From assembly GCA_010909165.1 (NCBI GenBank), contig MU008172.1, positions 496,001-560,000 of the forward strand: 64,000 nucleotides of DNA, read 5' to 3'. Positions 1 through 49,414 of this stretch are shown here, one piece after another. The position numbers were made by a program, and so were the translations under genes. Origin of the DNA: Anthoceros angustus (taxonomy: Eukaryota > Plantae > Anthocerotophyta). Within the stretch, counting starts at the first letter, position 1. Each line of letters begins with the position of its first letter. The notes beneath the pieces were generated by a model. That model ran no database searches. It was not told where the DNA came from and was given only the letters and a program-made list of their open reading frames with translations.

Positions 1-73
1 TCTTCGTTACTTGGATCAGCTATATCTAGCTAAGCAATATGACGGGCACAACCTTTTGCTTTGCTCTATGTAG

Positions 74-105
74 AACAGCGTCTGTTTAGAAAGGGGTTTC
101 TCCTG
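74..105 (+). repeat. Left TIR aacagcgtctgtttagaaaggggtttctcctg
   Basis: Exact reverse complement of 11796-11827. Confidence 0.95.
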
Positions 106-773
106 TCAAAAGGGGTTTTGGAAAAAATCCCAACCCTCTTTCGCCGGAAACTGAAGTTGGTTTGGTTTTTGTTGGTTTTTGTAGGTAAACAGACTCCGCG
201 CAATATCGGCGGATTCTTGAAAGCCTCTTTTGCGCTTTGGGCGGAGGTTGCCACCCCTTTCTCATATCAAGCAAAACACGTGTTTTTAAAAGAGATGTCT
301 TTGAATGGCGAGTTCCACTTAGAACAATGTAAGTAATATCGAGGTTTTTCCATGTATGCACACTTTTGTTTGGTCGCGGTCGTCCGTGCCACCCTTAGAC
401 TTACTGGGAAAGGGCAGAGTGCCAAGACTATGGGTCCAAAACACGTAATATGCATTCAAATCAAAGTCGCATTTTCCACGAAGGGTCAAAACGGAATTAT
501 ACCGGTCAGCGGACGAGCCCCTCATCTACAAGTCACAGCTACCCAAAGGGTCATCTACTTCAACCAAATTGAGCTCGAATCGCACCGTTTCTACATTTTC
601 CAAATCCACGCCTTTGTGTCACCAAAGTCATCGCCTTCAACCGCAAAACAAAACGCCGGAGCCTGCTGGTGGTAGTGTGCCGTTTTCATCCCATATTGTC
701 AATGCCGGTTGGTCTTCAACCGCCGGCCGTCTGGGTCCTGGAGTCCTTCATTCGACCCTTCTTTCCAAGCAAG

Positions 774-1638
774 CTATACACTTGCATTTTCGCCAATGCC
801 TCCGTCTGCATCTCCTTTGCCCAAAACTTGCTGTGGCCCCGAAAACTTATCTGTTATTTCTTGAACTCGTCCGTACCGCCCAACCTGCTCACTGCCAGAC
901 ATATACATTGAGCATCGTGCGTCTTTGTCAATGGCCACAACGTTCCTTTTCCGTTGTATCCGGCCACCAAAATGATCCCGATCCCGCAAAGGCCAACAAT
1001 CCGATCGTCTTCGTTGGAGAACATGTTCACCAACATGCCTAATAAGCCCACGTGTTCGATATGGCGATACGACCATCTTATCACCGGTGGTAAATCGCCT
1101 TCTTCACCACAGTCCCATGTCGGATAACTCTTGGCAGCACCTGTTTGATGTCTTTGCCGGGAAAAAGAGGAGCTTTTCCGACATTGGACTCTGTCCTCAC
1201 TGCTCTTCCCACTGTCAAATATTCCACTGTTTCCACAGCACCACTGTTAGGTGGGATGTTGGTTTTCTCCCATACCAGGGTCTGAATGACTTCTTTCCTG
1301 CACCAAGACCTCAAAGCCTCCCTGGCTTGAATCACCCCATCCACCCCATGCATAAGAATTATCCGGAACACATCGCTCGTGGTCTTCTCGTTGAAAGAGC
1401 TGATGATCTCTTTCAATTCTTCTTCAACGAAAGCCTTGTCATTCTCATGCTGTAAACCTCGAGGGAGGTCGCAGAAAAGAAGAGTATACCTCCTCGGTGG
1501 CAAAAATCCTTTCATATCCAAAATGTCTCGATGCACCACCGATATGCCACTTTGTCCAAGACCTGTGCACTCAAACCGCCACCGCATCCATGTCCTTGTC
1601 GGCCATTTGTTTTCGCTCTTCTTCCATCCGCTTCCCAT
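774..1638 (-). pseudogene. Beta-class N4-cytosine/N6-adenine DNA methyltransferase domain, frameshifted
   Basis: Minus-strand motifs in beta-class order: LLFCDLPRG (motif IV-like, 1470-1459), LVWEKTN..., VEYLTVGR, SPY..RGLIR/MLVNMFSNEDDRIV, AFAGSGS (motif I FxGxG, 990-976), LVAGYN, RNVVAIDKD. Reading all motifs needs several 1-bp frame changes. Confidence 0.8.
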
Positions 1639-1945
1639 GCGCTATAAACAAAATCTTGGAAAGGTTTTGGCGAGCTTTCAAATCCTCAATGTCTCCGGTT
1701 TACGCAAGCAGCGAGGCGGTGGTCGACAACTCATTGACAGAAGTGGAGGCGCCGCCGCGCACGATTGTGGCGCGGCCACCGGCGACTCCACCATGAACCG
1801 GCGGGCAATGCGTGGAGGCGCCGCTGGGCCGGTCGACTGGCGCACCGACCGCACCGCGCTGCGCCACGCACAAAAACAGAGAGTGGCGCCCGGCCACGGC
1901 GATTGCACTCACCGACCGCGACTCCCCAACGAATACACTCACTTA

Positions 1946-3680
1946 CCACTTCGCAAAAGTCGCTTGAACTTCGCCAATTCCTTGGCCTCGGTATGTTGGG
2001 AAGCTGTTTGGCGACTTTGAAGGTCGACACTTCATAGCCTTCGAAGGCATGCTCGATAAGGTTAATCTTCTTCCTGCCAACATCGTATCCATATCTTTTA
2101 GCTGCGGTTTCCTTGGATGACCTTCGGGTCACTATCAACATCTCTTCACCTTCTCGTCCTTCGGGACTCCTTGAATGCTCTCCATGCCCTTCCGAGCATT
2201 GGAGCCGGACGAGGGGCTTAGGACCGGGCACTGCTGTAGTTGGGTCTTGTGGCTTCCGCCGCCGCTGCCGTCCGACTGCGGCCGCCGCCTGGGAGTTCGC
2301 ACTTCTCCCACATCCGGAAAATGGTGTCCACGTTCTCCCACAATTTACCCACCTCGCAATCCTCAAGCAGTCTTCCATCCACCATCTTCTCGTACATAAT
2401 GGTCCTTGAGTTCCTCCAAAGATCCCCAAAGAACTTGTACACATTGAACTTCCCGCATCGGTTTTCCATCGGTGTGTCCGTGCCAAATCTCAAGCTCATC
2501 ATGTATGTAGCGACTTGTTCAATAAAACCAAGCTTCTTCCTCTTGTCGCATACACATTGTGATCAACCCAAGACCCGTGATTTCCCAAGCTCATATACAT
2601 GGCCCTCAAGCCATTGAAATTTATCTTCCGCGGATACATTTCGCATGTTGTCTGGCGATGCGATAGCAATGGTTCCCTCCAGCACCCCTAGGGTGTAATG
2701 GGCTCGATCTCCTCCGGTGCATCTTCTTTCTTCAAAACCGGTCTTTGGATCAATCATGCACAAAAGTGGGAGCGTCCCTTCCTTCACAGGACTGCGCATC
2801 GTCGAACAAGGCACTTCATCCATGCCTCATCCACCTTCCTTATCTCGAGCATCCGCCGTTAGAAATGAAGCGACGTGAAAAGTAAATGTGAATGTCGAAT
2901 GTTGTGGTTTGCACCCGCTTCTTGTAGGCCCGAGTGCGAACCATCTCCGATAGTCATCCTCCTGCGAAAGGAGCTCCGATCGTTCGGCATCGTGGTCGTC
3001 CGCAACCTCTTCTCTGCATGCTTCCTCGACTTCCTTAATTTTTCCGCCTCGCCCACTCTTCTCCATCACCAGCGAGATCTTGCCTTCCTCTTTCGCTTGA
3101 TTGGTGTGCTCTGCATGGAAATCAAAACAAGATGCTTCAATTCTTACATGGGTTCGAATTGCGGAGGGCGAGTTAGGAGCATTCTTACCAGCCATTCGCC
3201 TTCTCATCTTCACGAGACTGGAGCTGGATTCCCTTCTTCTTCTTTCTGGCGCCGGGCCGCTGCGACCGTCCTCTCTGACGAGGAGGGTCACCTCCTCCTC
3301 AAAAGCCTCGATTCAAGACCCCGAGGCTGGACATGTTGCGAGCCATGGCGGCCGTCGAGCTCGCCTCCGCCGGACCACGAGGCCGAGATCGCTCCTCCTC
3401 TTCCGGAGAGCTCGGCTCGCCACCGGAACCTCGTCCTCCTCCATCTCCGGTTGCATAATCCGGGCATCGTTCTGCACACAACCCACCGGGCCTGACAAGC
3501 ACCATGCCTCGCACCGCCTCGCTGCCCGATCACCGCGTCGATCACTACACTGCTCTTCAGACCCCTTCGTGGAGTAGAAGCAAAATTGTTCTCCCCTGCT
3601 CATTTTAAAGAGGAAAACAATGAGTATACCAAAGATGCGAAACCCTAATCGAAAATGGGAAGTGATACATGGTGACATAC
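1946..3680 (-). pseudogene. N-terminal part of the methyltransferase gene: charged region plus ParB/Srx-like domain
   Basis: Co-directional ORF pieces upstream of the MTase: IRKVDE..(copy at 4653)/MRSPVKEGTLPLLCMIDP, a GNH motif after a frame change, WLEGHVY, KKLGFIEQV. This resembles the ParB pattern R..D...V..L..S....G.L.P.LV...G.H. Probable donor GTAAGT at 1946. Confidence 0.5.
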
Positions 3681-6447
3681 AACCGACTTACATCTTGAAC
3701 ACTTTTGGAATCACGCAAGGCCGATTTCAACTGGCCGGCTCACAACGAGGCATTATCTTGGCAGCATCCATTATCGCAGGAGATGTGTGTTGATGTCATC
3801 GTTTATGTGCAAATGAGGTTTCTTGGTGACCAAAAGCGTATGTGCATATCTTCGCCCATTCCGTCCCTTGTTGCATAGAATCCATCCACTCTTGCAGGAA
3901 TCCCCTCAATACCATTGTAACCGTTAATCCATAAGGCCGAGTGGAATCCAAGGCAGCCCGGATCTTGGGTTCTTCTTCCGCAACAACGCTCCACTCTTTA
4001 TGCATGTTGTACCGCGGAAGAGAATCGGAGCTTTTTCACCGAAAGCTGCTCCACAAAGTTAAAAGCATGAGGAATCGCGGTGCATTTCCACCGAGGTTGG
4101 TGCTCTCGGCCATCAATGTCTTCATATCCTCTCCGTTGAGTACCCTTTGAGGTGGACGTCCGGACACTACCATGAGAGGATTCTCTCAATTGCATAATAG
4201 CGGTGGGGTTCTGTTACCACATTCGCGGGGATGCATCCCCTCATCCTGACGCCCTTGCGCGCCGATCCTGCCGCTCTTGCACCGCCATCGCATTTTTCCG
4301 CCGCTCGATGCGTGGCGGCGCCTCCAACGCAGGGGGTCGATCTGCATGCTTATTGCTGTGGCGCCCTCGCGATCACCATCCCGCAATCTTCAAAACCTCA
4401 TGCGGGAAGTTGGCGGGAGGAAGTAAGAGAATTCGATCCGGACTCTCGAACTCTTGATGAAAAGGAGAGGCTCGAGCCTGGAAATGAAATATGGATGTTT
4501 GAACGCATCAACGGGATTACGATAAAGCCTTAACACCGCTAGTTACGCTAAACGGCTCAAGTTGTAGCAACTCACAACGAACACGGTCATCATTCATTTA
4601 ACCTCAAATGCCTAAAATAGGCCCATCACAAATTCGATGCATCCACCTCATCTTATGCCTCATCCACCTTCCTTATCGAGCATCTGCCGTTAGAAATGAA
4701 GCGGACGTGCGATGATGTGAATGTCGAATGTTGTGGTTTGCACCCGCTTCTTGTAGGCCCGAGTGCGAACCATCTCCGGATAGTCATCCTCCTGCGAAAG
4801 GAGCTCCATCGTTCGGCATCTCTGTCAGACAGCTTCCTCTTGCATGCTTCCTCGACTTCCTTAATTTTTCCGCCTCGCCCACTCTTCTCCATCACCAGCG
4901 AGATCTTGCCTTCCTCTTTCGCTTGATTGGTGTGCTCTGCATGGAAATCAAAACAAGATGCTTCAATTCTTACATGGGTTCGAATTGCGGAGGCGGGCGC
5001 GAGGAGCATTCTTACCGACCATTCGCCTTCTCATCTTCACGGACTGCAGGCCGGATTCCTTCTTCTTCTTTCTGTGCGCGGCTGCGGCGGTCTTCTGGAG
5101 GAGGGTCACCTCCTCCTCAAAAGCCTCATTCAAGACCCACAGGCTGGACATGTTGCGAGCCATGGGCGGCTCGTCGAGCTCGCCTCCGCATCGGACCGAG
5201 GCCGAGGCGCCTCCTCTTCCGGAGCTCGGCTCGCCACCGGGAACCTCGTCCTCCTCCATCTCCGGTTGCATAATCCGGGCATCGTTCGATGCACACACAC
5301 CGGCCGCTGATAGGCGGCGGTGCGTTCGCACCGCCTCGCTGCCCGATCACCGCGTCGATCACTACACCTCTTCTTCACCCTTCAGTGGCGAGTAGAACGC
5401 CAAAATTGTTCTCCCCATTCATTTTAAAGAGGAAAACAATGAGTAAACCGATGCGGCGAAACCCTAATCGAAAATGGGAAGTGATACATGGTGACATACA
5501 AATACATCTTGAACACTTTTGGAATCAGGCCGATTTCAACTGGGCGCTCACAACGACGAGGCATTATCTTGGCATCCATTATCGCAGGAGATGTGTGTTG
5601 ATGTCATCGTTTATGTGCAAATGAGGTTTCTTGGTGACCAAAAGCGTATGTGCATATCTTATTCATTATCCTGTGCACATAGAATCCATCCACTCTTGCA
5701 GGAATCCCCTCAATACCATTGTAACCGTTAATCCATAAGGCCGATGGTGGAATCCAAGGCAGCCACGGATCTTGGGTTCTTCTTCGCAACAACGCTCCAC
5801 TCTTTATGCATGTTGTACCGCGGAAGAGAATCACGGAGCTTTTTCACCGAAGCTGCTCCACAAAGTTAAAAGCATGAGGAATCGCGGTGCATTTCCACCG
5901 AGGTTGGTGCTCCCTCGCGGCCATCAATGTCTTCATATCCTCTCCGTTGAGTACCCTTTGAGGTGGACGTCCGGACACTACCATGAGAGGATTCTCTCAA
6001 TTGCATAATAGCGGTGGGGTTCTGTTACCACATTCGCGGGGATGCATCCCCTCATCCGTGCAGCGCCCGCGGCGATCCTGCTGCTCTTGCGGCCGCCAGC
6101 ATTTTCGCGCTTCGATGCGTGGCGGTCGATCTCCGCATGCTTATTGCTCCGTGGCGTCCTCGCGATCACCATCCCGCAATCTTCAAAACCTGCATGCGGG
6201 AAGTTGGCGGGAGGAAGTAATTCGTATCCGGACTCTCGAACTCTTGATGAAAAGGAGAGGCTCGAGCTTACGTGGAAATGAAATATGGATGTTTGAACGC
6301 ATCAACGGGATTACGATAAAGCCTTAACACCGCTAGTTACGCTAAAAGCGGCTCAAGGTAGCAGTTGGAGTCAACACGGTCATCATTCATTTAACCTCAA
6401 ATGCCTAAAATAGGCCCATCACAAATTCGATGCATCCACCTCATCTT
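2822..6447. repeat. Tandem duplication of about 1.8 kb (2822-4654 and 4655-6447)
   Basis: Both units start atgcctcatccaccttcc and end ...gatgcatccacctcatctt. Matching ORF fragments occur in both (e.g. AIRTHVRIEASCFDFHAEHTNQAKEEGKISLVMEKSGRGGKIKEVEEAC). Confidence 0.95.
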
Positions 6448-7289
6448 ATGCCATTTTCTAAGGATGTGGCTGCACTCTCATTCAAGGTCCATCGAACTGC
6501 TACGCCATCACCCCATCAATGCAACCGCAATTATAAATCATCCAACACCACACGGTACCACCTTATGTCACATGTCTATAATTGTGGGTGTGACTTTGAT
6601 CTTGATTCAAAGTGCGTTCTTCCTCGCATGCACGTAGCTCTTGAAAATTTGCCGATGTTGAAGCGGTGGAAGGAGTTCTTGAAGTCAAAGGACTTGGATG
6701 CTATCGGTCGGAACGCGAGATTCCTCCGATATGCAACACTCGGTCGAGGCATCAACCAGCGGTTCTACTTTGAAATGCCTATCGGCGCAAGGTATTCAAG
6801 TTGAAGAGGAGAACTAGATGAATGCGTCGCAAAACTCGTCGGAAATCGATTGCATTCAAAGGCTCTTGAACATGATTCCGGATGTGTGTTATTCGTCTGC
6901 AGTGCACGGCCTCCACCACTTCCGCACGCGATAAGCGCATCCATTCCAAGACACCGCCTGCGATTTGTTGGATTCCATTCACGGAAGTCCTTCTCCGCCA
7001 GATGCCGTACATCCCGACCATCCGCAAGACTACTCCTCCAGGAAGTGCTCCACGGACGACACCGGATGGATATGGCCGCTGGGGTGAATGCCAACTCGGT
7101 TTGCAGCCGGTTGTATCTAGAAGATACTGCTTCCACTGCCGGCCCCAAAGACGTTCGGTGGAACTGTTGTGGAGGAAGAGGACTCGATGATGGTGCATTT
7201 GAACATCCACCTCCAAAGGCGTACATACAATTTGAAGCCCGGTCCGAATCATTTATCGAGCATGGCGGACCACCACGTAGACGCAAGTG

Positions 7290-9480
7290 ACGGCAATCTA
7301 AAGTGCACGAGATGAAATGTGAAGAGGTTCGTATTACCGTGATTTTCGCAAAACTGTGGTAGACAATGCTTGAGGACAATAGGGAAGGCAACCTTTCGAG
7401 ATTTGAGGTATCGGTTCCTTAGAATGTGCGCGGGAGGCGGAGATGCACCTACAATCCCTTTTGATGTCGATTATGAGGCGATGGAAGGGTTAGGGTAGAC
7501 TCGTTTCTTGTCGGACGAGGAAAAGTGTATTGTTGTAGAGGCCTTGACGCGTTTATTGTATCGGGTCTAGCGCAGCGAAGAAGCAAAGCGAGCAATCGGA
7601 AACATTGCGTGGTCCGCCTTCCGCGAGGCGATCAATCGCGTCGCAACAGCCTCTGGGCGTGGATGAACCAACTGTTTATGCTTATTGCCGAGAGAATGCC
7701 AAACATTGAAGTGTATCACCTTCGACTCTTACTCAAAAGGCGAGGTGTTTCAAGAATACAAGCAACATATGCGCTGGCCAAGAAGATCTGATGTTTCTCA
7801 TTCCTACTTTTGTCGACTTTCGACTTCCACAAGGTGAAAATTCAAGAGCAATCGGTTTGCCTTGTGCACAACTGCGATTACCTCAAAGCGAAATATAAAG
7901 AGCGAGAAAAGCAGAGAAAAACAAGGTGAGGCTTGATGTGAAATTGTGTTTTGGCAGTGCGGTGGGGATGGTGCGCCGGTCACCGGCGCTGCAGGTTGTG
8001 CGCGCCACCGGCGGCGAAAGCGCCGGCCACCGGCACAATATACGCGCCGACCGGAGTAGTTTGAAGCGCCCGTCGGCGCAGACTCGGTTTATTGCTATCC
8101 TCCTTCCAGGCGCTTTTATTCCTCAATGTTGTTTGGGTGATTATTTTGCAGAAGCATTTGAAGGCGATCCGAGGCGAGTACCATCAAGTCGAGAGAGAAA
8201 ATGCATCAAGCACCGCGTGAAATGTTATGGAGACCCGGCAAAGTATATCGGGATATCCATCGACGGATGGACCAACGAGACACCGGCTTCCACATTTCAC
8301 GCGTTTACCCAAGGACTGCCGATGTAGGTTTTGATCGGCGTCCATGTTGTGGGGTGCATGATTTATAACTACACCATGTCGGCGGAACTCTTCATGGCAT
8401 ACGGAACATCCAACGATGCAAACTCGACTATAGCCAATATCCAAGATGTCATTTCAAATTACGAGGACTACTACCAAAGGTTCTTTATCTTCAACTCGAC
8501 AATCTGCACGGGAGAATAAGAATGCCGCTATTCGCTTACGAATATGTTGGTAGAGCTTAAGGTTTTGAGAAGGTAAAAGTAGGATTCCTCCGGTTGGGCA
8601 CACTCATGACCAGTTGACGGATGTTTTCGAGGTTTTCAAGTGCTTGCGAAGGAAGCTTTACGTTGCCCAAACCGACGGTATTTTGGAGAATGCATATACG
8701 CCCAAACCAAAAATTATGGAGGTGAAAGAAGTTCCGGACTTCAAAGTTTGTGTGGCCAATACCTTATGGTAAGGTCGGCTATAAAAGTTGTTGCAGGAAA
8801 GCACAATATATCTTTTCAAAGATTCAAAATAACCCGAGAACGCGAGGTGAGCGGACTTGTTGTGATGAGGGGCAAACAATATTCCACGATGAATACCGGT
8901 CACCGGACGAGGGTTTGGAGTTTTGAATAATGTCCCATCTACTCCTATTCAAGCTCGTTTGGTTCATTTGGAGGTAAAAAGCGGTTGCGGAGGAGAGATC
9001 CGAAGAAGTCTTGCAAAGAATGCGTGGGAAACTAGAGGAAAACTCGGGACCCATTTGGGCGCAGTGAGGATATTTGGTGGGAGGAATTCCGAGCAATCAC
9101 CATCGTGGACAAGATAGCATGTGAGCATGCCGAGGAATTGAAGACCCCTTGGCAATGGTACGATAGAACACATAATGAAGAGTTGCATCGCCTTTGGTTG
9201 TACAGTGAGATTTTACAGATCCAATCGTCGCAAGTGCCCCGACATGTATGGATGTACTGGCGGATGATGCGAAGGCGGAACAAGAAAGCTTGAACGGCGA
9301 TGTGTTGGAGATACAAACAGTCACATGATTGCGGTGCCTTGTGAGAGATGTCGATAATCGACCATTCTCGCTCGCAAAAGTTCTGGTGGACTTCCAATGT
9401 GACGCCCATTCATTAAAGTCCATTGGTGGGTGACTAAATGCACCGACGCATTTGAAGGCGGTACCTAGAGGAGATGATTT
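7290..9480 (+). pseudogene. Sola-like (DUF7869-type) DDD transposase, frameshifted, one intron
   Basis: Fragments: CGRQCLRTIG, WMNQLFMLIAERMPN, FALCTTCDYLK, KYIGISIDG, VHVVGC, LPKVLYLQLDN..ENKN, EKVKVGFL.VGHTHDQ.D.MFS, PWQWYDR, HMIAVPCE, VHWW...AFEG. Intron 7926-8151 (CAAG|gtgagg...ttttgcag). Confidence 0.85.
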
Positions 9481-10687
9481 TACGATCGCCCACCAACGCT
9501 CGTGGGGTCGCTCTCAACGACGGAGCATGAGGTTGCGGAAACACGTCGACAAATTGCTTCTTCGACACATTCATCTTGGCATACGGGTTTTCTCTAACAA
9601 AGCGAAGCAACTAAATGCAAGGACGAACCATAATACGGAAAAACATGTACGTTTTGCGCCTGCGCGGGAGGAAGCTCGGAACATATGGAAGGAAGGGACG
9701 TCATGGATAATGGCGTTGCGAAGATGTTGCATCCAAGGCGAGGACATTGAAACACTTGATGAACATGGTTCATGGAGTTCGATTAGTTAGTTTTCGATTG
9801 ACCATGGACTCCTACTAGTGCGGAAGGTATGCCGGGGCCGCACTTCCAGGAGTGGATAGGTTGTGTGTTCCCCATGGACATAAACGGCTTAACCAAGTGC
9901 GAGTATGGGCACACAAAATGACGGTACAACACTTTGCGATTATGTTCCAAATCGGCCAAAACCGTGTCTCTATTCGATGGACCTTATTTTTTAGGACAAC
10001 ACATGATAAGACCGGCTACGACAAATGTTCAAACGCATCCACAGTTCGTCCCACACTTTTCCAAGTTTTGGAGGAATGAATTCAAAGACAATAATTTTTT
10101 GGCCACGTTCTTTTCCGGTCACGAAAAGTGGATGCCAAATTTCTTCAAAACCATAATAACGTACATGGTTTCGGGACATGCTTTTTGAATATGATGATGG
10201 GAAAGTTTATCGCTTTTGCCCGGAGCCAATTCAACTAATCCGATATTGCGCGTATTAATCGTTGGTATTCATCCATCGGTTTCGGGCATTCTCGGCCCGC
10301 ACCACTTCTTGTCGAGTCATTTACATCACCGGCGCCTTATACTCGAGTTCATGGCGATTTAGTCGGTGTGATGAAGGGCCAAATGACCTCATTGTTCCAT
10401 AATTTCGTCATGTCCATAGTTTACGCATTTTGTGTGGTTTTGTATGTTTGTATACTGGGGGCCTAGGCGCCGCATAAGTGCGTGCCTAAACAATGCTATG
10501 TGCAAACTTGTACATAATGTGCAAAAAGAACGCGAAAATGATCTTCTAATGGGGAAGCATGTCCTTTTGGCGTTCGAGGATGCCGAACTCCGACAAAATA
10601 ACAAGTAGCGACATCGCGGAGGTTCACCTAGACCACTCTTATATACCTATCCTATGCCCTAATGCGACGAAGAACACCCTTTATTTA

Positions 10688-10930
10688 CGGCGCGCACGCG
10701 CACCATGGGGCAGGCGCCACGCGCGCGCACCATGGGGCAGTGCGCGCACGCGCGCGCACCATGGGCAGGATGCCCGGTGCGCGCACTTGCGCCGCACCGA
10801 AAGGATGCCCGGTGCGCGCGCACCATGGGGCAGGATGCGGTGGGCGCACTGGGCGCGCACTGTGGGCAGGACAGCGCCGCACTTGCGCCGCACGGGGCAA
10901 GGAGGCCCAAGTGTGCACACGCGCACCCAA
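10688..10930 (+). repeat. CpG-rich subterminal array (GCGCGCACCATGGG / GCGCGCACTTGCGCCGCAC motifs)
   Basis: About five copies of gc(gc)gcaccatggg plus three of gcacttgcgccgcac-type motifs, about 900 bp inside the right TIR. Confidence 0.9.
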
Positions 10931-11795
10931 GGTCAAGAAGGGCTCGGGAGCATGAACCCAAATGGTTCATGCCTCCTAGTGCATTCCTAGGCAGTTCATC
11001 CAAAGAAAAAGAGCAAAAGTCTTTAAAACCCTAAAACCCTTAAAATTTACAAAAGTCCAGTTTTTCGAGTTTGGCACAAGCTGGCGCAAGATTGCTCTAA
11101 AATTTTGACAAATTTTTGCATTTTTGTATTTGTTTTGATATTTTTGTTGTTTTAAAGGGTTCCTTTTGGCGTTTTCAACCTTTTTGTGCAGCACCCTAAT
11201 GTGGATATGGTCTTATCTTTACTTAACCCTCATCTTTTTCTAGTGGTTAAAACTTTGAACTAGTAGTGAAAACCTTTTGCATCTTTTGAATCTAAAGACG
11301 CCCGGCCCACTTGCGCACCATGCCACTCTCATTCTCGCACTAGACGTGGATCAAGAGCATCAGGCCAAAGAAGATATTATTGTCCCAATGTCTAAGGAAC
11401 AAAGTCTTGTAAAATTCTCGGAGCGAGAGTATAGTCATAAGATTGACTAGTATGAATGAAAGGTAGGTGCAAACAAGTTTGCACCAAAATTACAAGCCCT
11501 AAAAACTCTAAATGTTTGTATCGTCCAACACCGCAATGATTGCGAGATGTTGGAGACTTTAGATGTATGCGCATAAGTTTGCAGTGCCCAGTCTAGTTTG
11601 AAAAAAGCCGAACGAGAATGGGACTTTAGGTTTTGCCACGTGCAATCTACAATCTCAAATAACGTGTATCAAAACAATTATTCAAAAGGTTGCGGGTAAC
11701 ATGTTTGCAGAGAAATATCAAAAAGCCTGATTATAGTGCGGATTTTTTCAAGTGCAAAAAGGGGTCCGGCCAAGTCCGTGTGCAAAAAGGGGTTT

Positions 11796-11827
11796 CAGGA
11801 GAAACCCCTTTCTAAACAGACGCTGTT
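11796..11827 (-). repeat. Right TIR
   Basis: caggagaaacccctttctaaacagacgctgtt, followed by GTAG. An extra aaaggggtttc at 11786-11796 makes an 11-bp hairpin with the TIR. Confidence 0.95.
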
Positions 11828-12085
11828 GTAGGGAAGTGAGCTACTCTAACTAGAGATTTATCACAATAAGTAAGATCTTAAAATCTAATAATTCTAGTTT
11901 GAGACTATACTTTAAATCACATATCCTCATATAGTATTATATATGTACAGCACATCTACAATATAACCTGGTTGTATCATTATTGGAGATAATAGTGTTG
12001 AGTCATTAGGGTTTGGTTATATCCACATATATACAATGTAATTAATAATATGTTAATTGATCTGCACCCATTACATATTTTGTTA

Positions 12086-12097
12086 TGGTATCAGAGC
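12086..12097 (+). promoter_or_regulatory. Primer-binding site (tRNA-iMet), copia A
   Basis: TGGTATCAGAGC directly after the LTR end. Confidence 0.9.
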
Positions 12098-13289
12098 CAT
12101 ACAGGGTATAGATTGCATTCATAAGAATGCACATTAAATTGTGCACATCTGGATGTGCACAAATGTGTGTTTGTGTTTGTTTCTTGTTTAGAAAATAAGT
12201 TTCTAATGAGAAAACAAGAAAATGATCAAGAAACCAACTTGTAGTTTCTTTTCTTGATTTTTATTTAGAAAATTTGCATTTCTAGAGTCATCCTAGTGCA
12301 CTGTTGTCAGTTATGTAGAGCAATTTGACACTAGGTACACTAGAACAAGCTACCCAGTGGCACAAATCTTTATATAAAATCATATAGAATTACAAAAATG
12401 GTTCTTGAAAATTTCTAAAACACAAATCCTGGCCAAATGAATGGCCAATCTACTGGACGGGCAACAATGGCTGCCACGCCACGCGCATTCCGTGAGAATC
12501 GCGCGGAGGGCAAGGAGTGCAAGCCGCTAGGCAAACGATTGCAGAACTTCTATACCCACAAACTCAGGAATGGACAGTTCGAACGAAAAATCAGCCCGCA
12601 CTTGCTCTTGAAGTGAGGGAGTCATTCAACACTTTGATTGAGACTCTCTTCCCTGAACAGCGCCATCGGTGTTTGCCCCTCCACCTAGAAACCCTAACAA
12701 TCTTCCAGTGCGTGTATTCATGGGCAGTGCATATAAGTCGAGTAATCAGGTAATCGACATTTACGTTTCCTAACCACATGTCGCACCACACACAAGTGTA
12801 TCGCTTAAATGCGGTGAAGCACACCGGCAACATGTTGATAGGCGTTTTCAAAACATCGATCGAGAAGCGTCTTTGTATGTAGACTTACAATATCGAAAGA
12901 GCAAATAGGACATTTGGACTTCAAGTTGCTTACATTGTTAAAGCCCGCTTTACTTGCTAACCCATTTTCGGTGTTGCATGTAAGCGTGCAAATAAAACAA
13001 ATAAGCGCCATTTGATGCTCCAAATTCATGTCCCTCTTGCTCCACCTATGCATTTAACAATGTGGGAGATTAGAAAACAAAGGATTGCAAACAAAGTTCA
13101 AATGCATATTTTCAACCTACATGGTACGGACTTGCTAACCCTTGTATCGGCGCTTGCAGCCCATCTTTGATGCATCAATAGCATCTTAGATACCCTTGAA
13201 CCATTAGCCTGACCCATGCGTTAGGTCGAGCAGAGCATTAGTCTAACGACCATAAAATTCCTAACGGAAGGACCTACAAAATCCTAAAC

Positions 13290-15555
13290 ATGGTTGAGCC
13301 AAACACTAACCTTGGTGGAGATGGCTTCAAGGAAAAGAACGGGGGAGATTATGATATCTAGGTTATGCGGATGCGAGAGCACTACAAAACAAGCGCTATG
13401 AAGCTGGCCAAAGGGAGGACAAGTTTCACGCCATTGTGCACCACTCCTTCTATTCGAAAGAAGAATCGGGATGCATGGACTATTAGGGATGAATGCCATG
13501 TACGATCCGGAGTGGGTTGACCTCGACATCTACGGACCTCTGGATGCAAGACTTGGTGAGATATGGTCCAGGCTTCAAGATCTATACAGACAAATACCAC
13601 ACGGCGACGGCAATGTTCGGCGCAAAATGAGAGCGGAGATACAATTGAAAAACATCTTGGACTCTTTAGAACCTTTGGTTTCTAAGTTAGAGGCGCTTCT
13701 CAGAACCTCTCAAGGATGATTTACTCACATTGTACTTCATGATGTCACTCCAGTCATGGTCACACTTTGTGGCGTCCTACAACGCAGCTTGAGGCGGAAA
13801 CTAGCTAAAGGCGCAGGCTTTACCCTTCCCCAAACAACGTTTTGAGTTAGTGAGAGCTCTTCTCGGAAGAAGCAACAAGAGGAACCGCGAGGCATCTTGG
13901 CAAGCGAGGCTCTTTACACCAGCGAAACAAAGGCAGCAAGCCTAACCCAGGTAAGCAGAATACCTCAAGTGCTAGCACTCACTGAGCTACTTGAAGAAAC
14001 CCAAGAGGAAATGCCGGTGCAGATTCGGTCATTGGGAGAGCGAGTGTCGAAAGAAGCGGTCGTACCTGCAAGGAGGCAAGCTCACTTTTGAGACTGCGCC
14101 ATGGTGAAAAGCAAGCTTCCTTCATCACAGCGGTAGGGACTAGGGTTTTGCTCATCCTTGCTAACCCACATGTCGCACCACACACAAGGGAGACGATATT
14201 AGTGGTACCTTGATACAGTGCAAGGCGCATTAGTTTCGATAAAGCGCATTAATCTATATAGACCGGTAAAGATCGTTCGTTTACAGGTGACGATAGATCA
14301 CTTATGTCTCGAGAATAGGCACGGTGAAAATTCCGGTTCCTTGAGGATCACACTCTTACTCAGATGTGTATCATGTCCACAAATGACTAGGAACCTCATC
14401 TCATAGGAAGCTCAACATGGATAACAACATCATCTGTTCACTCCCACAGAAGGATCATCGATGCATTTGATCGAAAGTAATGCTTATGGTTCCAGGACCA
14501 TGATCTATTCGTTTGCACACAGCGATGCTAGAACACTTAGCTTCTAAGTCTTGAGACAAGCGCAAGCGGCGCAAGCGATAGAAAAAGCTAGGTTATGGCA
14601 TGCGTTTAGGTCACCCTCACGGTGCCAAGTTCGAAACTAGCGGTGGTGACATGTATGGTGATGGAAAAATTGGCGGTTTGCCACCCTTACCACTTTGTTA
14701 GCACGTGTCTTGTCAAGCGTCATCAGCCCTTCAAGAACCAAGCTCCTCACGGGGCTTCATTCGTTCTTGAGCTCGTCCGACATATGTGGGCCACTTTCAC
14801 CCTCAATTGGTGGTGAGATATTTCCTAACATTCCACAGACGACAACCGGTTGTCATGGCTTATATTCGAAAGCCAAAGTGAATACTTCTCCACATTTAAA
14901 GACTACATGAGTATAGAGATGGGTGGAAAAGCAATTGAAAACCCTCCGATTCGACATGGTGGTGAATTCATCAAAGCAATTTCAAGCCTATTGTGCGGAT
15001 GAGGGATAGGGCGACAACTTACGATCGTACCACAACAAAAATGGGTATGGAGCGCTTGAATTTGCTGCGAGATGGTTTCTTCCTTGTTCCACCAAGCCTC
15101 ACTTGCCACTCCCATCTGGGTGAGGCCCTCATGAGCTGTTTATTTATGGTTGCCCTGCTGCGATCTTAGGGGAGACCCGTTATGAAGCTTTCTTTGGTAG
15201 AAAACCAGCTATCCTTCATCTTGAACCTTGTTGCATAGCTTACGCTTTCATTCCTAAGGCCAAGAGAACCAAGTTATGCTAAGGCCAAGAAATTCCTTAT
15301 GATAGGATACACGAAGGTATAAAAGCTTACAAGCTTTATGGCGTACCTCGAGAAAAAGGTGGTCTACCTTTGATGTCACCTTGATGAAAGCCGGACTTGC
15401 AAGTGGGGCTTCCCACTACACAGGAGGATTTACCTCTCCTCTTCCACAGCGTCCTGTTTTTCACGACCGCTTTGAGAGATTGCTCTGCAGGGAAGAAGAA
15501 CATGACAAAATGATGAGGCGGATGAAGCAATTTTGCTAATGACTTCTAGCAGAAC
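13290..15555 (+). pseudogene. Copia gag-protease-integrase, frameshifted
   Basis: NGGDYDI*VMRMR (gag N-terminus), knuckle remnant near 14070, WYLDT (protease, about 14205), LWHA.LGHP (14593), LELV..ICGP, TPYEAFFGRKP, AYAFIPKAKRTKL, IGY..GIKAYKLY. Stops at AEP (about 15553), where RT would begin. Confidence 0.85.
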
Positions 15556-15606
15556 CTCCTCCGTCCCAGCCATCGTCGGGCCAGCCATTATCGGGCATTA
15601 GGCGCC

Positions 15607-16135
15607 TTGTTGTAGATTACGTTGTAAAGCCTTTTTCTCAAATTTTGATCTTTATTTCTTCAAAAATATTTTTATCATCATTAATCAAAAATATGATTGG
15701 AAGCCATTTACAATAGCAATTGATGATGTGGCTTCCTTGTTATAGATTACATTGTAAAATATTTTTCTCAAAATGTATTCTTTATTATTAAAACTCTTTT
15801 TATTATTAATCAAAAATATGATTTGAGGTAATATATATCGATTGATGATGTGGCTCCCTTGTTAGATTACGTTGTAAAATATTTTTCTCAAAATGTGTTC
15901 TTCATTTTTAAACTCTTTATTATTGTTATTAATCACAAAAATATTATTGAAGACCATTTGCGGTGGATTGATGACTCCCTTGTTGTAGATTACATTGTAA
16001 AATCTCTTTCTCAAAATTTGATATTTGATCTTTATTTCTTCAAAAGTCTTTATTATTGGTATTGATTTCAAAATATGATTAGAGTTCATTTATAATGAGG
16101 ATCATGATGTGGCTCCCATGTTGTAGATTGCGTTG
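15607..16135. repeat. AT-rich tandem array, unit 120-140 bp, about 4 copies
   Basis: Recurring gatgtggctcccttgttgtagattacattgtaaaatatttttctcaaaat at about 15607, 15737, 15858, 15979 and 16118. Confidence 0.9.
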
Positions 16136-29139: not shown

Positions 29140-29480
29140 CCAAGCACCATGGTGCGCGCGCGCGCCACTGTCAGGCTGTGAGGGGCCATGATGCGCACGC
29201 GCGCGCACCATGGGCCCCACAGCCGAGGGTGGAGTAGGTGCGCGCACTTGTGCGCGCACCCGCGAGGCCCGTGCGCGCCGCGCGTGCACCATGGGTCCCG
29301 GGGAGGGGCGGGCGGCGCCGCGCGCGCACCATGGGCCCCGGAGGCCATCGCCGGGTGCGCACCTTGGCCTGGAAGCGCGCACTTGTGCGCCGCACCCAGC
29401 TCGATAGCCTGCGCATGCGCGCGCACCATGGGTCCCGGGGAGGGGCGGGGAGGTGGGGCGGTGCGCCAAGTGCGCGCACT
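29140..29480 (+). repeat. Second CpG-rich GCGCGCACCATGGG array
   Basis: Same motifs and same orientation as 10688-10930; probably part of a fragment of a related element (about 28.4-29.6 kb). Confidence 0.85.
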
Positions 29481-30599
29481 GCCTAAGATAGAGGGGCCTT
29501 TACGCACAAGAGCACCAATGAGGGCGGCCCGTCCTCATCCAAACTACCCGAAAAGAACTGAAGAACCAGGGGAGTTCTGAAGCTAGATTCAATGAATCTA
29601 GCTAAGAACCTCGGTTCTATGTCAATGACATTGACTTGGTTATCTGTCTTGATAGTTGTGCAGGTAGGAGTGGCAAGCCTAATGTAATGCCTGGGTAGAA
29701 AGAGGTTTCTCCTTAATAAGGGGTTTAGGCAAAAGTCCGCCTTTCTTAGGCAAAACGCCCGTGATGTTTTCCGGTTTTCCAAGATGTGCACTCGACTTGG
29801 AATAGAGTGATCTATTCGGTGCCCTTGCTCGCATGTTTTGGCCCCACTGCACTTCCATTTAGCAAAGTAAATGAGCCATTTAAGAAGGTGTAAATGAAAT
29901 TAAATGTGTTTTGATAGGTTTTTAGCATGTCTTCATGTCATCCAACGGGGTTTGCCGTCGCATCCAGATATGAGTGCGCGCACAAGTGCGCGCACTCACG
30001 TTCCTCATGCACAGAATTATATATTGGGTCTGCTATCCAGAGAATGATTAACATATGAAATTATTGGACAGATGAAGTTTGCAAATCAACTGCAATGCAA
30101 AATCGCTATTATTCCAATGTAGGTGATACTCACTGGCTGGTGTGCAGGAAGATCATCTCTTCCATCTACCATTAGGGATCGCAATTACAGAGGACAAACA
30201 TGGTCATTACACGCCTGCTTCTAGTCCGCTTCTGACCGTTGGGAGCTATCTTCAAACATGCCTTCAAAACCCCGAGGTTAGGATCTCCAATACCTCCCGG
30301 TGTCCGCCTCGCAATTGGTCCAACTAATGCTTTGATGGACTCGCTGGATCATCCTCAACTCGAACATGGTCTTGGGTTTTAATATCATTGACCATGGTGG
30401 TGAAACGCTTTCCTCGCCTCAAGGTGGTGGGTGCCCCTTGTCGTTATTCCCGCCTTCCGCGATTTGCATATGGTGGAGTTCAAATAGCTTGGTCTTTATG
30501 AGCTCTTGGGTTCTCACATAAAGCGTCTCTCGCCGTGGCAAACCCATATGAAAGAATAAAGGTCTCCGCCACCACAAGGCAATCGAGATGCTCGACGCT

Positions 30600-32900
30600 T
30601 CCTTTGACGAGAGCATTCTTGTCCGCATGGTGGCAAAATCTCTTCTGCATATAATCGCCTTCAAATGCATTGCGTTTCCTCAGAACCCACCATTGCACGA
30701 CTCACGGTTCGTCACGAAATCTAGGTTCTCCACCGCAACCCAAAAGGCCTGCTTTTGGTCATCCGCCTCACATGCAACGGCAATCATATGGCCACGGATC
30801 TCACCACATCTCCGTCAACTGCACTTTCCTTGCCCTTGCCGCCGGATATAATTACCAAGGTACATTGCCTTGGCCCTGCCTTTCGACCGAGAGAAGCGTA
30901 ACATCCGCACAAGGATGGTATCGCTATTTCGCAGCCTCTACCCGATTGTACCATCGCCATGGTATCTCTAGCTCATGGTCGACGCCACCGGAGATTTTCG
31001 AGACGCCAGTGACTCCCAAAAGCCGCTCCACCATCTTGCTCAACCGGTAAGGTACTTCAGATCGGCTCCGAAAGTGCCTCGATGCCATCCAATGATCTAT
31101 GAGGGTTGGGATCCGAGCTTTCCCATGTACTTGTAGTGCAGAGGTGCCCCATATGGGGTTTCGGGATGAGGCGAAGAAACTCAAGTCCCTCGTCGGGTTC
31201 CCGTGAGGCGTGGTTGATAAATATTTGCCAAGCACTACAACCATGGCTCCGCGCTGCTCTTCCTCGTGATTTTAAATTGATGTTGATAACTATGGTTGTT
31301 CAAGCGTCCAAGAGCATCCGTGCCCCTTTTACCCATCGAGGCCATACATACCTTGATCCATAACACCGGTAATCACTTTCACTGGATTTGGGGTATACGC
31401 TTGTTCAATAAGCGCCATCGTAGCTGGTATACATTGCCTTCTTATGTCTTAGACTTTTTGAAAAACAAGAGAACATTTGATCCACTAAATCATGGTGTGC
31501 AAGAAGGAATCCAACTTTAACCTTCTCGAATACCCGCTTCTTCACCGGCATACTCGATATGCAAACAACAAAGATATTCTTGTTCTCGCCGTGTTGTCCA
31601 ATTGAAGGTAAAGGTCTTTGGCAAGACACCGTCATAGTTGAGTATAATATCTTGAATAATATGTATCGTCAAAGTTGGCATCATTGCGGATGTTCGGATA
31701 GTTGACATACACCTTCGCCTTCATCACATTATTGTATACCAAACAACCAACAACATGAACACGAATTAACCCATCGGAAATCTTTTGGAGGCCCCGTGAA
31801 GTGCGGAGCTCGCCTTGCTCGTCCATACCATCTATGGCAATTCCAATATATCGGTTGGTTGTCCCACAGACTTCAGCCGATGCTTCGCTAGCTTCACCGC
31901 TCTTGTTTTAATCGAACTCGCGCACCGCAGCCGCCTCCAAACGCTCGCCAAAGGAACCATGACGATGTGAGATTCAGAGGCAGGCGCTGCAAGGAGAAGG
32001 CGCGCCGCAGAGGGGCCCACCGTACGGCGGGTTGCGCGCGCACAAGCAAGGGCGCCGACTTGCTGCGCGCCAAGGCGCCACAAGGCGACTGGCGCATGCC
32101 GCACTTGGCGCAACGGTGCGCATCGCACTCCTCCGTGCACGCCGCAAGGCGCACTCCTCCTTGGCGCCAAGGCACTCCTCGCGCACACTTCACAGTCCCA
32201 CTTGACCTACCTTGATCTCGCCGATCCGTCAGAATCAATGGCCGTCTTGATAGTTTCACCGTACACATTTGGAAAAGCGGTCGACTTTGGGATCTTGACA
32301 TTGGGAAGTGCATCTTCCATAATGCGCAAAATGAGAGTGAGATCGTTTGACATCCCCGCCTGCCACCTCCCGCTTGTAGTCTTGGAAGATCTCGCAGATA
32401 GAGTCGCAGTTGAACACGCAATGTTTTGGCATGCGCTATCTTTTAAAAATTGGTCCATCCAAGCAATGCATTCTAGCACATGGTCTTGCTTTGGACGGGC
32501 TTGGACCTTCATTCGATGACCATGGTGTGTTCCGAGAACCTGCTCACGATCGTGATACCTTCTCCATCCAATGCGTAACACCTTACAAAACTTCAACACA
32601 ACATTGCGTTCGAGGTCTCCTAAAGGTAGTTGATCACCTTTGTTGTGTCGGGATAGACTTGAACTACCTCAAGCGGACTTTCCAAATACGCCTCAAGGTT
32701 TCGACCCATTCCCAAGAAGCGATACGAGGTTTTCTATATGTTTCCTTCCAACTTTCAAAGCAAACACCTTTGCTACAACAATGCGACGACCATGCACTCG
32801 AACCGCCAAGAGAACACAACCTTTGGCACGCTTCCACCGTCGCCGGGATATTGCCGACGTTTTTGAGGGCGGCTCGCACGAAAGTCTCCATAAGCTTTGG
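30600..32900 (-). pseudogene. Sola-like DDD transposase, frameshifted, one intron
   Basis: CCSKGVC, AWMDQF, FCALWKMHFPNVKIPK, RYIGIAIDGMD, IRVHVVGCLVY, LPKTF..LDN..ENKNIF, FEKVKVGFLL.H.DLVDQMFS, IPWRWYNR, GHMIAVACE, WWVL..NAFEGDY. Intron 32210-31987. Confidence 0.85.
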
Positions 32901-33664
32901 GATTGAAGTTTGCTCAAGTCCTCCAAAACCACCGTCTGATGTCGCAATCTTCGATGGAACAGGGAAACGCTTCGCCCGTCGCATCGTAGAATAGCCGCGC
33001 CCGCCTCGAGAGCATCTTCTTTGGCTGCGAGATCCACGCCCCGCCACTTCCTTGTTCCGTGAGTCACAAAAGATTAGGCCTTGGGAAAGAAGAACTTTCG
33101 TCATTCTCTAATGGAGTCGATCCATGACCATTACCCGCTTTGGAATAGAAGCATCAGCGTAGTTTCCATAATAAATAACCTGCGCTGATGTCTCGATGCC
33201 CACTCTCGAGGCGATTTGAAACCGCCCCTCAATCGCCTTCATTCATGCTGCCGCCTGCAAAATCGAATGCCATGCCGCCTCGATTTTGCCATAGGTTTCG
33301 GAGGGCTATGCATTGCGATGTCGGATCAAATATCCACACGGTGTGAGACGAGAATGTGAAAAAGGATAGTGGCCCCGTAATCCGAACGTTCAAATTAGGG
33401 GACTTCATGGTTGGACATGATGACAGCCGCCACAAAATAAACTCTCGCAACGGCAACCCGACGCCGGCGAAGTTTAGTAAACCCATGGTTACTTAACCCT
33501 TGGTTAAAAAACTCAGGGTTCAAGCCTAGTTAATTAACCATGGTTCCATCTTAACCGAGGGCATCCTAAAAAACGGGAAGAGCCCGTTTTTAGGGTTTCC
33601 TCCACATGTTTTGGCGCGGTGCGCAGCCGGCCTTTTCATCACCGCTATGTCCGATTTGGATTGT

Positions 33665-34110
33665 CTCGGCGTGCCAGGCGTGCCAGGCGTGCAGGCGTGC
33701 CCAAGGGCGCGCAAGGAGGCGCGACCGTTGATGTGGGGAGTGGCAGATGCACGCCTCAAATCTCGGTGAGGACTCGCCTTCAGGCTTGCTCACAGCGCGC
33801 CAAGGCGTGCCCACAGCGCGCCAAGGCGTGCTCACAGCGCGCCAAGGCGCCAAGGCGCCAAGGCGCCAAGGCGTGCCCAAGGCGCCAAGGCGCCAAGGGC
33901 CGCAACCAGTCAACCGCGCCGCTGGCGTGCAGGCGCCAAGGCGTGCCAGGCGTGCCCAAGGCGCCAAGGCGCCAAGGCGTGCCAGGCGTGCCAGGCGTGC
34001 CCAAGGCGCCAAGGCGCCAAGGCGTGCCCAAGGCGTGCAGGCGCCAAGGCGTGCCAGGCGTGCCCACAGCGCGCCAAGGCGCCAAGGCGCCAAGGCGTGC
34101 CCAAGGCCCG
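33665..34110. repeat. GCGCCAAG / GGCGTGCC octamer array
   Basis: About 45 short units such as gcgccaag, gcgtgccag and gcgtgcccaag. Confidence 0.92.
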
Positions 34111-34650
34111 CCATCATCTCAGCGCCCTTGCCTCGGCCTGCATCGCTTCGCCGCTTGGAGGGAGGTTACCGTGGAGGATGGTCCACCACGCTGGCGTGTT
34201 CACGGACTTTTCTCCCACCAGACATATTCACGGAATCAAAACACGTAGAATGAAAATCGCCACATGTTAGCAAACTCGAGAGAAGACAATTGAAGGGCAC
34301 CAACCGCTATTTCACAATTCTAGAAGATCGGTGATGATTCTTGCAGAATCCTGCGAGAACACACGTTTCACGCCTCTCAGAGCCTCCACTACTCCGCAAA
34401 TCACCAAAGCATTTTCTTCGTGTCGGTTATGAACAGACACGCGCTTGGAAGCTTGGGGCCGCCCGCAGACCGGGAAGCGAAGGGGAAGGTAGGGGTTGAT
34501 GGCACTGGTGTGGTGAAACTTGAAGGCCAAGGAACCGGGCCAGTCTGAGGATTGGCACATGGAACTCACAAGGGAAGAGTGGGCGTCCCAAGGGGCTTCT
34601 GTATGGGAAGAAGAGGAAGGGAGCATCAAGAATAAGATAGTACCCAGACA

Positions 34651-49200: not shown

Positions 49201-49414
49201 GCGCCACGCCGGACACCACTGCCCCGAACAAGACCCTCCTTCCCAGCCTGAATTCCGAAGCCCCCCCACCTCCATCCCCGTCCATGGACGCAGCCACAAC
49301 GGCCCTGCTCAGGGCGGTCCTGGCCCGGGACGGCCCGGCCGTGCTCCCGCCATGCCCTACTCGAAGCCAGGGAGCCGCCGGGGAGACGACGAAGCGGGCC
49401 GTGGAGCAAGCCAT
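46254..49414 (-). CDS. RER5/RER6: RETICULATA-RELATED 5/6-like plastid protein (DUF399 + DUF3411), multi-exon
   Basis: Transit-peptide-like start (MACSTARF..., alternative ATG at 49498), [124 protein letters not shown]. Confidence 0.92.

Follow-up and report, generated by a model that had tools for sequence, protein, structure and literature searches.

A probable Sola1-type transposon with an oppositely oriented ParB-methyltransferase-like accessory gene in a plant-like genome

Transposons that carry a DNA-binding and DNA-modifying module of their own have recently been described in algae. Sola1-1_Ec32 from Ectocarpus (September 2025, Genome Biol) spans 21.5 kb and encodes on the opposite strand a 1104-aa protein that combines a ParB-like domain with an N4-cytosine/N6-adenine (N4C/N6A) methyltransferase (PMC12477816). 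A preprint on Bostrychia reports giant Plavaka (CACTA-type) transposons of red algae with the accessory genes PAG2 and PAG3 (10.1101/2025.02.11.637652). For such elements, binding and marking of their own DNA has been published as a hypothesis (PMC12477816; 10.1101/2025.02.11.637652). Furthermore, a 2016 survey of eukaryotic adenine methyltransferases lists Dam-type enzymes fused to a ParB helix-turn-helix (HTH) in chlorophytes and enzymes derived from a phage ParB locus in haptophytes (PMC4738411). Here, we study a stretch of 64,000 nucleotides (contig MU008172.1, positions 496,001 to 560,000; all of it is referred to as the window) and, within it, the element at 74-11827. We are fairly confident that this element is a Sola1 cut-and-paste transposon (DDD-type, DUF7869 transposase) with an oppositely oriented ParB-methyltransferase-like accessory gene. 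The methyltransferase family of the latter is absent from the 2016 survey. An earlier note on this DNA had considered that the element family might be undescribed, which no longer holds given the Sola1 element with ParB and N4C/N6A methyltransferase reported from Ectocarpus in 2025 (PMC12477816).

The element comprises 11,754 bp and is delimited by perfect 32-bp terminal inverted repeats (TIRs) and a 4-bp target-site duplication (TSD; coordinates of all features are given in Table 1). The TIRs are complementary at 32/32 positions and form the longest inverted repeat that a repeat finder identifies across the first 13 kb. When up to 3 mismatches are allowed, the 32-mer is found at these two sites alone in the window, while 0 are expected by chance. 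The left junction (70-105) reads ctatGTAG followed by AACAGCGTCTGTTTAGAAAGGGGTTTCTCCTG; at the right junction, the exact reverse complement of AACAGCGTCTGTTTAGAAAGGGGTTTCTCCTG is followed by GTAG (11796-11831). Given the perfect TIRs and the TSD, a recent insertion can be argued. Subterminal CAAAA(A)GGGGT motifs are confined to both element ends and are candidate binding sites, i.e., the pattern CAAAARGGGKT occurs three times in 64 kb, each time at most 75 bp from an element end, compared to 0.15 expected occurrences. The accessory gene (minus strand, 777-2826) and the transposase gene (plus strand, 7343-8930) form a divergent pair. Between them lies a tandem duplication in which no coding content is recognisable. 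A blastn comparison of the element with the remainder of the window reveals no second copy; it returns just a TIR-like match of 44 nt, the GC-rich array and a stretch of transposase sequence with 69% identity.

The plus-strand pieces at 7343-8930 look like mutual continuations across frames. An N-terminal region with CC..C and C..C patterns (7343-7926) is followed by the catalytic core (8106-8888) with SIDGW, LYLQLDN and VGHTHDQ, while downstream open reading frame (ORF) pieces up to ~10185 may provide the C-terminus of the transposase. The piece 8569-8769 shows a weak DUF7869 match, and DUF7869 proteins align to 8106-8888 in three frames (tblastn). Via tblastx, the region is linked to two related contigs, L001 and L006. 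On L006, an intact 500-aa ORF beside a methyltransferase of the family discussed below matches DUF7869 with E 2e-50; it has 390 relatives, of which the named ones come from Riccia sorocarpa, Ceratopteris, Adiantum, sea urchins, amphioxus and bivalves. The contexts MDG.NQ, Q.DNT..ENKN and VGHTH.QIDQ.FS are common to DUF7869 proteins and the curated Sola1-1_Ec32 transposase. For the latter element, a 4-bp TSD, AACCG termini and Repbase Sola1-1_PPa as best blastp match of the transposase are documented (PMC12477816 supplement), and 4-bp TSDs are typical of Sola elements (PMC3627910; PMC12477816). The window TIR starts with AACAG, which resembles AACCG of this single reference. We thus call the transposase Sola1-type based on the motif match by eye, the TSD and the termini. 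A literature search for DUF7869 found no paper.

Next to the left end, the minus strand carries the methyltransferase-like gene. Its motif IV sequence DLPR is located at 1459-1470 and FAGSG at 976-990 in the frame shared with DLPR, while VAID (927-938) is in another frame. That is, motif IV precedes motif I, which is the permutation of the beta class, and the family alignment has the same order. The intact ORF 1084-1641(-) carries DLPRGL at the motif IV position (1456-1470) as well as VWEKTN. The adjacent region 777-1103(-) includes VVSPY, FAGSG and NVVAIDKD and is readable only via ~5 frame changes from ~1083 to ~930. Here, positions 223-234 and 270-289 of profile A2 match the frame of 777-1103 and positions 237-267 that of 857-1246; tblastn with the homologues P0002, P0004 and P0005 concurs on the motif I segments across frames. 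In the window, the S-adenosylmethionine (AdoMet, SAM) motif I (FxGxG) and the (H)P.QKP helix motif before it can be followed only across frame changes, with VVSPY upstream of FAGSG; the relatives have YQKP and D..SGSG at these places.

The 186-aa ORF 1084-1641(-) yields nothing when compared to the PDB by phmmer. A whole-library phmmer search with the same ORF identifies 9 relatives with 30-42% identity (best E 7e-14), 8 of which are in the family. Full-length relatives show D[LI]P[RY]G, W.K.N, YQKP and D..GSG in this order. The homologues P0002, P0004, P0005, P0006 and P0009 score 30-50 bits for PF01555, for which the gathering cutoff is 26.7 bits. Searching the PDB with the profile of the methyltransferase family results in TTHA0409, CcrM, RsrI, MboIIA, DpnA and the rotifer N4CMT (E 1e-9 to 2e-6), and hhalign relates the family to bacterial ParB-methyltransferases with a probability of 99% (E 3.7e-18, 212 columns), where DlPrGl is aligned on DPPYNV. 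The AlphaFold2 model of the clade member P0004, i.e., of a homologue and not of the window's broken gene, reaches a predicted template modelling score (pTM) of 0.79. Its Foldseek matches are CcrM, M.BceJIV, MboIIA, RsrI, HpyAVI, PvuII and N4CMT (E 5e-14 to 1e-9). Within the window, profile A2 finds a single locus among all six-frame pieces (1084-1641, E 2.3e-28, profile positions 64-223).

The methyltransferase identity is thus derived from homologues and profiles, since the window pieces alone match no Pfam model. Sequence profiles and the model of the homologue support a predicted beta-class amino-methyltransferase domain of family PF01555 and of prokaryote/phage type. Its motif IV differs from (D/N/S)PP(Y/F/W): the window and P0001-P0005 have DLPR and the sister clade has DIPY. 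Across the family, D, P and the next G are invariant and the first Pro is replaced; in the DLPR clade, the aromatic residue is replaced as well. With regard to the earlier note, the perfect 32-bp TIRs with their GTAG TSD and the minus-strand gene with DLPx, FAGSG and VAID in beta-class order are all present where it had described them. Its plus-strand Sola-like transposase, divergent from the methyltransferase gene, can be specified as Sola1 (~7343-8930), and the PF01555 membership it proposed is found for the homologues but not for the window pieces themselves.

In several related contigs, a conserved ORF is located upstream of the methyltransferase and shares its strand; it has 29 database relatives, and no Pfam domain is assigned to it. 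The best PDB match of the respective ParB-like profile is the HTH region of Spo0J, which is weak (E 0.057), and three members of the ParB-like family touch Pfam HTH_ParB, again weakly (E 0.043). The AlphaFold2 model of the ParB-like protein from contig L008 has a predicted local distance difference test (pLDDT) value of 78 and a pTM of 0.58. Its top 30+ Foldseek matches are essentially ParB, Noc, KorB, PadC and sulfiredoxin, with E 1.6e-6 and weaker. The model thereby supports a predicted ParB-type fold of the accessory domain, i.e., an N-terminal domain plus HTH, and an earlier hunch of a ParB domain is borne out by these fold matches along with the weak Spo0J HTH and HTH_ParB matches. In the window, 2221-2562(-) is the sole significant match of profile A3 among the six-frame pieces (E 0.0013) and is located just upstream of the methyltransferase; homologues from L007 and L008 match the same spot. 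The profile match is collinear when the remnant is read through the TGA at 2563-2565 as X. It is limited to the C-terminal part, and the ParB-N core of the window remnant is not significant alone. Since P0011 holds the C-terminal part of the ParB-like protein and the methyltransferase in one ORF, both probably belong to a single gene. For both accessory domains, the clearest counterparts are in bacteria and phages.

Across two deep clades, methyltransferase, ParB-like gene and Sola1 transposase are found linked, and this association is a conserved trait of the family. A methyltransferase of the family adjoins a Sola1/DUF7869 transposase on four more contigs (L001, L006, L008, L009), and these contigs stem from at least four samples. 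On L001, the N-terminus of the transposase is divergent from the ParB-methyltransferase unit, which is the arrangement of the window, while transposase and methyltransferase are tail to tail on L006, L008 and L009. In a tree that also includes 34 relatives from bacteria and metagenomes, the transposon-linked methyltransferases group in a single long-branched clade (100/100 support) that comprises DLPR and DIPY subclades; the window is assigned to the DLPR subclade by motif and best matches. Judged by profile score, the closest sequences outside the clade have DLPY; one of these is surrounded by genes for HNH endonucleases and genes with inteins, as is typical of phages. Among the bacterial relatives recovered, fusions of ParB and methyltransferase are common. 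At the DNA level, blastn detects no similarity between the element and the related contigs. The window's TIR motif is absent from every fetched related locus, and no convincing TIRs were found on the related contigs.

Based on these findings, the following mechanism can be proposed. The transposase would recognise the TIRs and the subterminal AAAGGGGT repeats, move the element and leave 4-bp duplications. The accessory protein would bind the element's own DNA through its ParB-type domain and methylate nearby bases. Because motif IV begins with D, adenine N6 is a likelier target than cytosine N4: a D at this position is an adenine-type signature, while most N4C enzymes have S (PMC8885841). Alternatively, the protein of the DLPR clade, including the window copy, may act as a SAM-binding, DNA-binding partner without catalysis; DLPR together with the conserved AdoMet motifs would be compatible with either an altered enzyme or such a non-catalytic partner. 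In both modes, the accessory protein would tune transposition or counter host silencing. It is in this sense that we infer self-binding and self-marking for the window element. The marking with 4mC or 6mA that the earlier note had suggested would have to be reconciled with DLPR in place of (D/S/N)PP(Y/F/W) and with the broken frames of the copy.

Several observations weigh against the reading as a Sola1 transposon with a ParB-methyltransferase gene. The Sola1 assignment is a comparison by eye with the motifs of one published sequence, complemented by TSD and termini. A Pfam scan of 20 stop-free window pieces gave no methyltransferase or ParB match but only the weak DUF7869 hit. Both element genes are frame-broken in the window copy, and the in-frame TGA 2563-2565 of the ParB-like remnant is a substitution-type break. 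The GxxR box of ParB (arginine/CTP-binding) is not kept: GGNH is invariant in the DIPY clade, and the position is not conserved in L004, the window and the DLPR clade. Comparing the ParB-like family with the ParB domains of bacterial ParB-methyltransferases by hhalign shows no relation, which leaves unsupported the notion that the two domains were acquired together in one event. The DLPR motif IV lacks the aromatic residue, and none of the active amino-methyltransferases known to us has Arg there. In N4CMT, joint mutation of S and Y in SPPY abolished activity (PMC8885841). Finally, methylation, expression and transposition are predictions for this element.

One alternative is that a piece of host or bacterial DNA was captured just once (Pack-type capture) or entered as contamination, and that the methyltransferase-like gene has no role in the transposon family. 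The window offers two points in its favour, i.e., it contains a single copy with these TIRs, and no methyltransferase is seen in the second Sola1-like remnant (~29.7-34.2 kb). The same pairing is, however, present on the four contigs mentioned above, which derive from at least four samples and fall into two deep clades, and this recurrence makes a one-off capture very unlikely. In addition, the ParB-like partner gene is conserved too, the gene is located within the TIR/TSD limits amid eukaryote-like DNA, and Ectocarpus Sola1-1 has an equal architecture. A captured fragment, which the earlier note had named as the outcome that would speak against its proposal, is thus largely refuted, and we give it next to no credence. 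A different question is how the broken frames of the copy are to be read, namely whether it is a defective copy mobilised in trans or an intact one with frames damaged by assembly indels; either is conceivable. Aligning the tandem duplicates (2812-4659 vs. 4644-6452) reveals 77 small gap events compared to 54 substitutions. The gaps are mostly 1-2 nt long and mostly outside homopolymers. Such a ratio far exceeds usual natural divergence. It suggests uncorrected long-read errors in assembly repeats, which affects every 'pseudogene' call in repeats of the window. A simple decayed pseudogene was considered as well; this reading is weakened by the indel-rich pattern of 77 gaps vs. 54 substitutions and ~5 frame changes. 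That the frame breaks are assembly artefacts from unpolished long reads and the copy is really intact, possibly autonomous, is in our view a tentative option to be taken seriously, albeit not the favoured one. Besides the gap excess, it is in line with the perfect TIRs, the intact TSD and with ~5 frame changes in ~200 nt where every segment nevertheless retains family-conserved residues and a canonical FAGSG. On the other hand, the errors would need to be very patchy, because no break occurs over 558 nt (1084-1641) or in host ORFs as long as 1872 nt, and the TGA at 2563-2565 is of substitution type.

With respect to the accessory protein itself, the methyltransferase domain of the DLPR clade might be a catalytically dead pseudo-enzyme, i.e., a DNA- or SAM-binding regulatory partner like METTL14 or the inactive DIRS1 domains. 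P0001-P0005 and the window sequence, with an identity of 31-42%, all keep DLPRG, in which Arg replaces the aromatic residue, and the METTL14 and DIRS1 methyltransferase domains are considered inactive owing to such substitutions (PMC4738411). This has to be set against the AdoMet motif (D..SGSG, or FAGSG in the window) and YQKP, both of which are kept, unexpectedly if SAM is unused, and against the phage-like DLPY relatives, which show that the first Pro is dispensable. We rate a dead enzyme as a real possibility that falls short of being the expected case. Clearly less plausible appears the opposite extreme, in which the DLPR type would be active with an unprecedented catalytic motif. Its ParB-like domain would guide it to the subterminal repeats where, within a land-plant-like genome, it would mark the element with N6-methyladenine or N4-methylcytosine (4mC). 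If true, the transposon would encode its own epigenetic mark, by which transposition is controlled or host silencing by 5-methylcytosine is blocked. Furthermore, one may ask whether N4-cytosine methyltransferases of plant hosts, such as Marchantia DN4MT1, descend from the transposon-borne family. Both are of PF01555 type and occur in plant-like genomes, and the liverwort Riccia abounds in related transposases. DN4MT1, in contrast, has a TSPPY motif and groups with N4C enzymes of prokaryotes, while the transposon family has D[LI]P[RY]. Moreover, neither the whole-library search with the N-terminal half of the window gene nor the profile search, which was limited to proteins of ~229-728 aa, gave a named-plant protein. 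Such a descent is therefore highly improbable, and on present evidence the element does not explain the origin of plant DN4MT1.

Table 1. Coordinates of the element's features in the window and of palindromic units on two related contigs
Feature	Position	Strand	Basis
Target-site duplication, left copy, GTAG	70-73		read directly; identical to 11828-11831
Left TIR, 32 bp, begins AACAG	74-105	+	32/32 complementary to 11796-11827
Subterminal CAAAAGGGGTT motif; candidate protein-binding site	107-117	+	related to AAAGGGGTTT core within TIR
Methyltransferase-like gene, C-terminal half (AdoMet-binding, motif I)	777-1103	-	profile A2, tblastn, three-frame read-out
Methyltransferase-like gene, N-terminal catalytic half, intact 186-codon ORF	1084-1641	-	phmmer, profile A2, alignment A1
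ParB-like accessory domain remnant, one frame with in-frame TGA 2563-2565	2221-2826	-	profile A3
Internal tandem duplication, ~1.8 kb (2812-4659, 4644-6452), between both genes	2812-6452		89.5% identity
Sola1-type (DUF7869) transposase gene, frameshifted	7343-8930	+	DUF7869 match, tblastn, tblastx, motifs
GC-rich minisatellite, 27-35 bp units, near element 3' end	10693-10838		repeat analysis
Two subterminal CAAAAAGGGGT motifs (11755-11765, 11783-11793)	11755-11793	+	motif count
Right TIR, 32 bp	11796-11827	-	complementary to left TIR
Target-site duplication, right copy, GTAG	11828-11831		matches left copy
Palindromic units, contig L008	25-67, 2919-2949, 4160-4382, 5724-5748		repeat analysis
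Palindromic units, contig L009	1287-1325, 3595-3633, 4919-5060		repeat analysis

Beside the element, the window contains a second, more degraded Sola1-like element on the minus strand (29690-34200). Its transposase remnants at ~30.9-32.7 kb show IDGMDEQ, GENKN and LLAHHDLVDQMF; a TIR-like terminus is located at 29696-29712 (TAGAAAGAGGTTTCTCC) and a GC-rich repeat at 33.6-34.2 kb. Neither a second terminus nor a methyltransferase or ParB-like gene was detected at 29690-34200. The GC-rich minisatellite near the 3' end of the first element (10693-10838) is similar to one beside the terminus of the second (29193-29432), both with GCGCGCAC.. units of 27-35 bp. The ratio of observed to expected CpG is ~1.04 in the element, 1.01 in the second element and 0.68 in the gene-bearing right half (36000-64000), i.e., the transposons in the window are without CpG depletion. 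Intact ORFs that resemble host exons are found at 41531-43402(-) (acidic, 623 aa), 46853-47626(-) (RETICULATA-like membrane protein by eye) and 51586-52500(+) (tetraspanin-like). These long ORFs at 41531-52500 suggest a plant-like host.

Two of the related contigs' features are of note as well. L001, the 16-kb contig that bears the closest relatives of the window methyltransferase, has, downstream, a gene for an Ulp1-type Peptidase_C48 at 11918-12892(-) and a RecQ-like helicase fragment at 15394-15961(+), which could be neighbours or extra cargo of a larger element. On L008 and L009, palindromic units of ~40 nt (core AGCGATACCGGTATCGCT) recur between and within ORFs, often at ORF boundaries (Table 1). 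They may represent hairpin elements carried in introns or arrays to which proteins bind.

What makes such elements of general interest is that transposons with their own DNA-binding and DNA-modifying module could mark themselves, a logic unlike that of host-imposed silencing. The idea of self-marking was raised only in 2025, for a Sola1 element of a brown alga and the Plavaka elements of red algae. The pairing of Sola1 with a ParB-methyltransferase is widespread and old, given two deep clades and two gene arrangements, and extends to a plant-like genome. New in our analysis are the breadth and depth of the family, a predicted structure that backs the ParB-like domain, the division into DLPR and DIPY clades, and the plant-like occurrence. 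Since the DLPR clade has swapped the catalytic aromatic residue and kept the SAM-binding motifs, the family provides a natural contrast of putatively active versus altered forms.

Among known systems, the bacterial and phage ParB-N6_N4_Mtase fusions (PF02195+PF01555) share with the transposon family the whole methyltransferase domain, a ParB-type module placed first and the FAGSG motif I, and the phage-like DLPY methyltransferases show a motif IV variant in a phage-like context. In contrast to the bacterial fusions, the transposon family forms a separate long-branched clade, and the ParB parts show no detectable relation by sequence. The bacterial fusions are, furthermore, tied to terminase or restriction-modification loci and the transposon family to a eukaryote-type transposase. 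The bdelloid N4CMT and Marchantia DN4MT1 belong to the same Pfam family with the same permuted fold, and N4CMT is among the fold matches. Both are host-domesticated, single-copy genes with SPPY (PMC8885841) or TSPPY and proven 4mC activity, whereas the family of the window resides on transposons, carries D[LI]P[RY] and has a putative activity.

Mobile elements with DNA-modification enzymes are also known from retrotransposons bearing DNA methyltransferases (DNMTs), from DIRS1 and from Mariner elements in giant viruses (PMC5890265, PMC3627910, PMC4738411). These use other transposition mechanisms and other enzyme families, namely C5-DNMT, PCIF1-like and Methyltransf_26. The Plavaka elements are DNA transposons in which one accessory gene resembles an N6-adenine methylase and another has a ParB domain; both are proposed to bind and modify the element's own DNA. 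They differ in the transposase superfamily and in domain composition, as ParB is joined with a 2-oxoglutarate (2OG) oxygenase and a SET domain with the methylase.

The closest counterpart is Sola1-1_Ec32. It agrees with the window element in the catalytic context (DN..ENKN and GHTH.QIDQ.FS), the 4-bp TSD and the AAC..G termini, and its ParB-like and N4C/N6A methyltransferase gene is located opposite the transposase, as in the window; the two accessory proteins are likened by the published description, not by sequence. Differences concern size and termini, i.e., 21.5 kb with imperfect 282-bp TIRs for Sola1-1_Ec32 compared to 11.8 kb with perfect 32-bp TIRs here, as well as the plant-like genome, the DLPR motif IV and the broken frames of the window copy. 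The window element is thus a further example of the recently recognised Sola1 elements with a ParB-methyltransferase.

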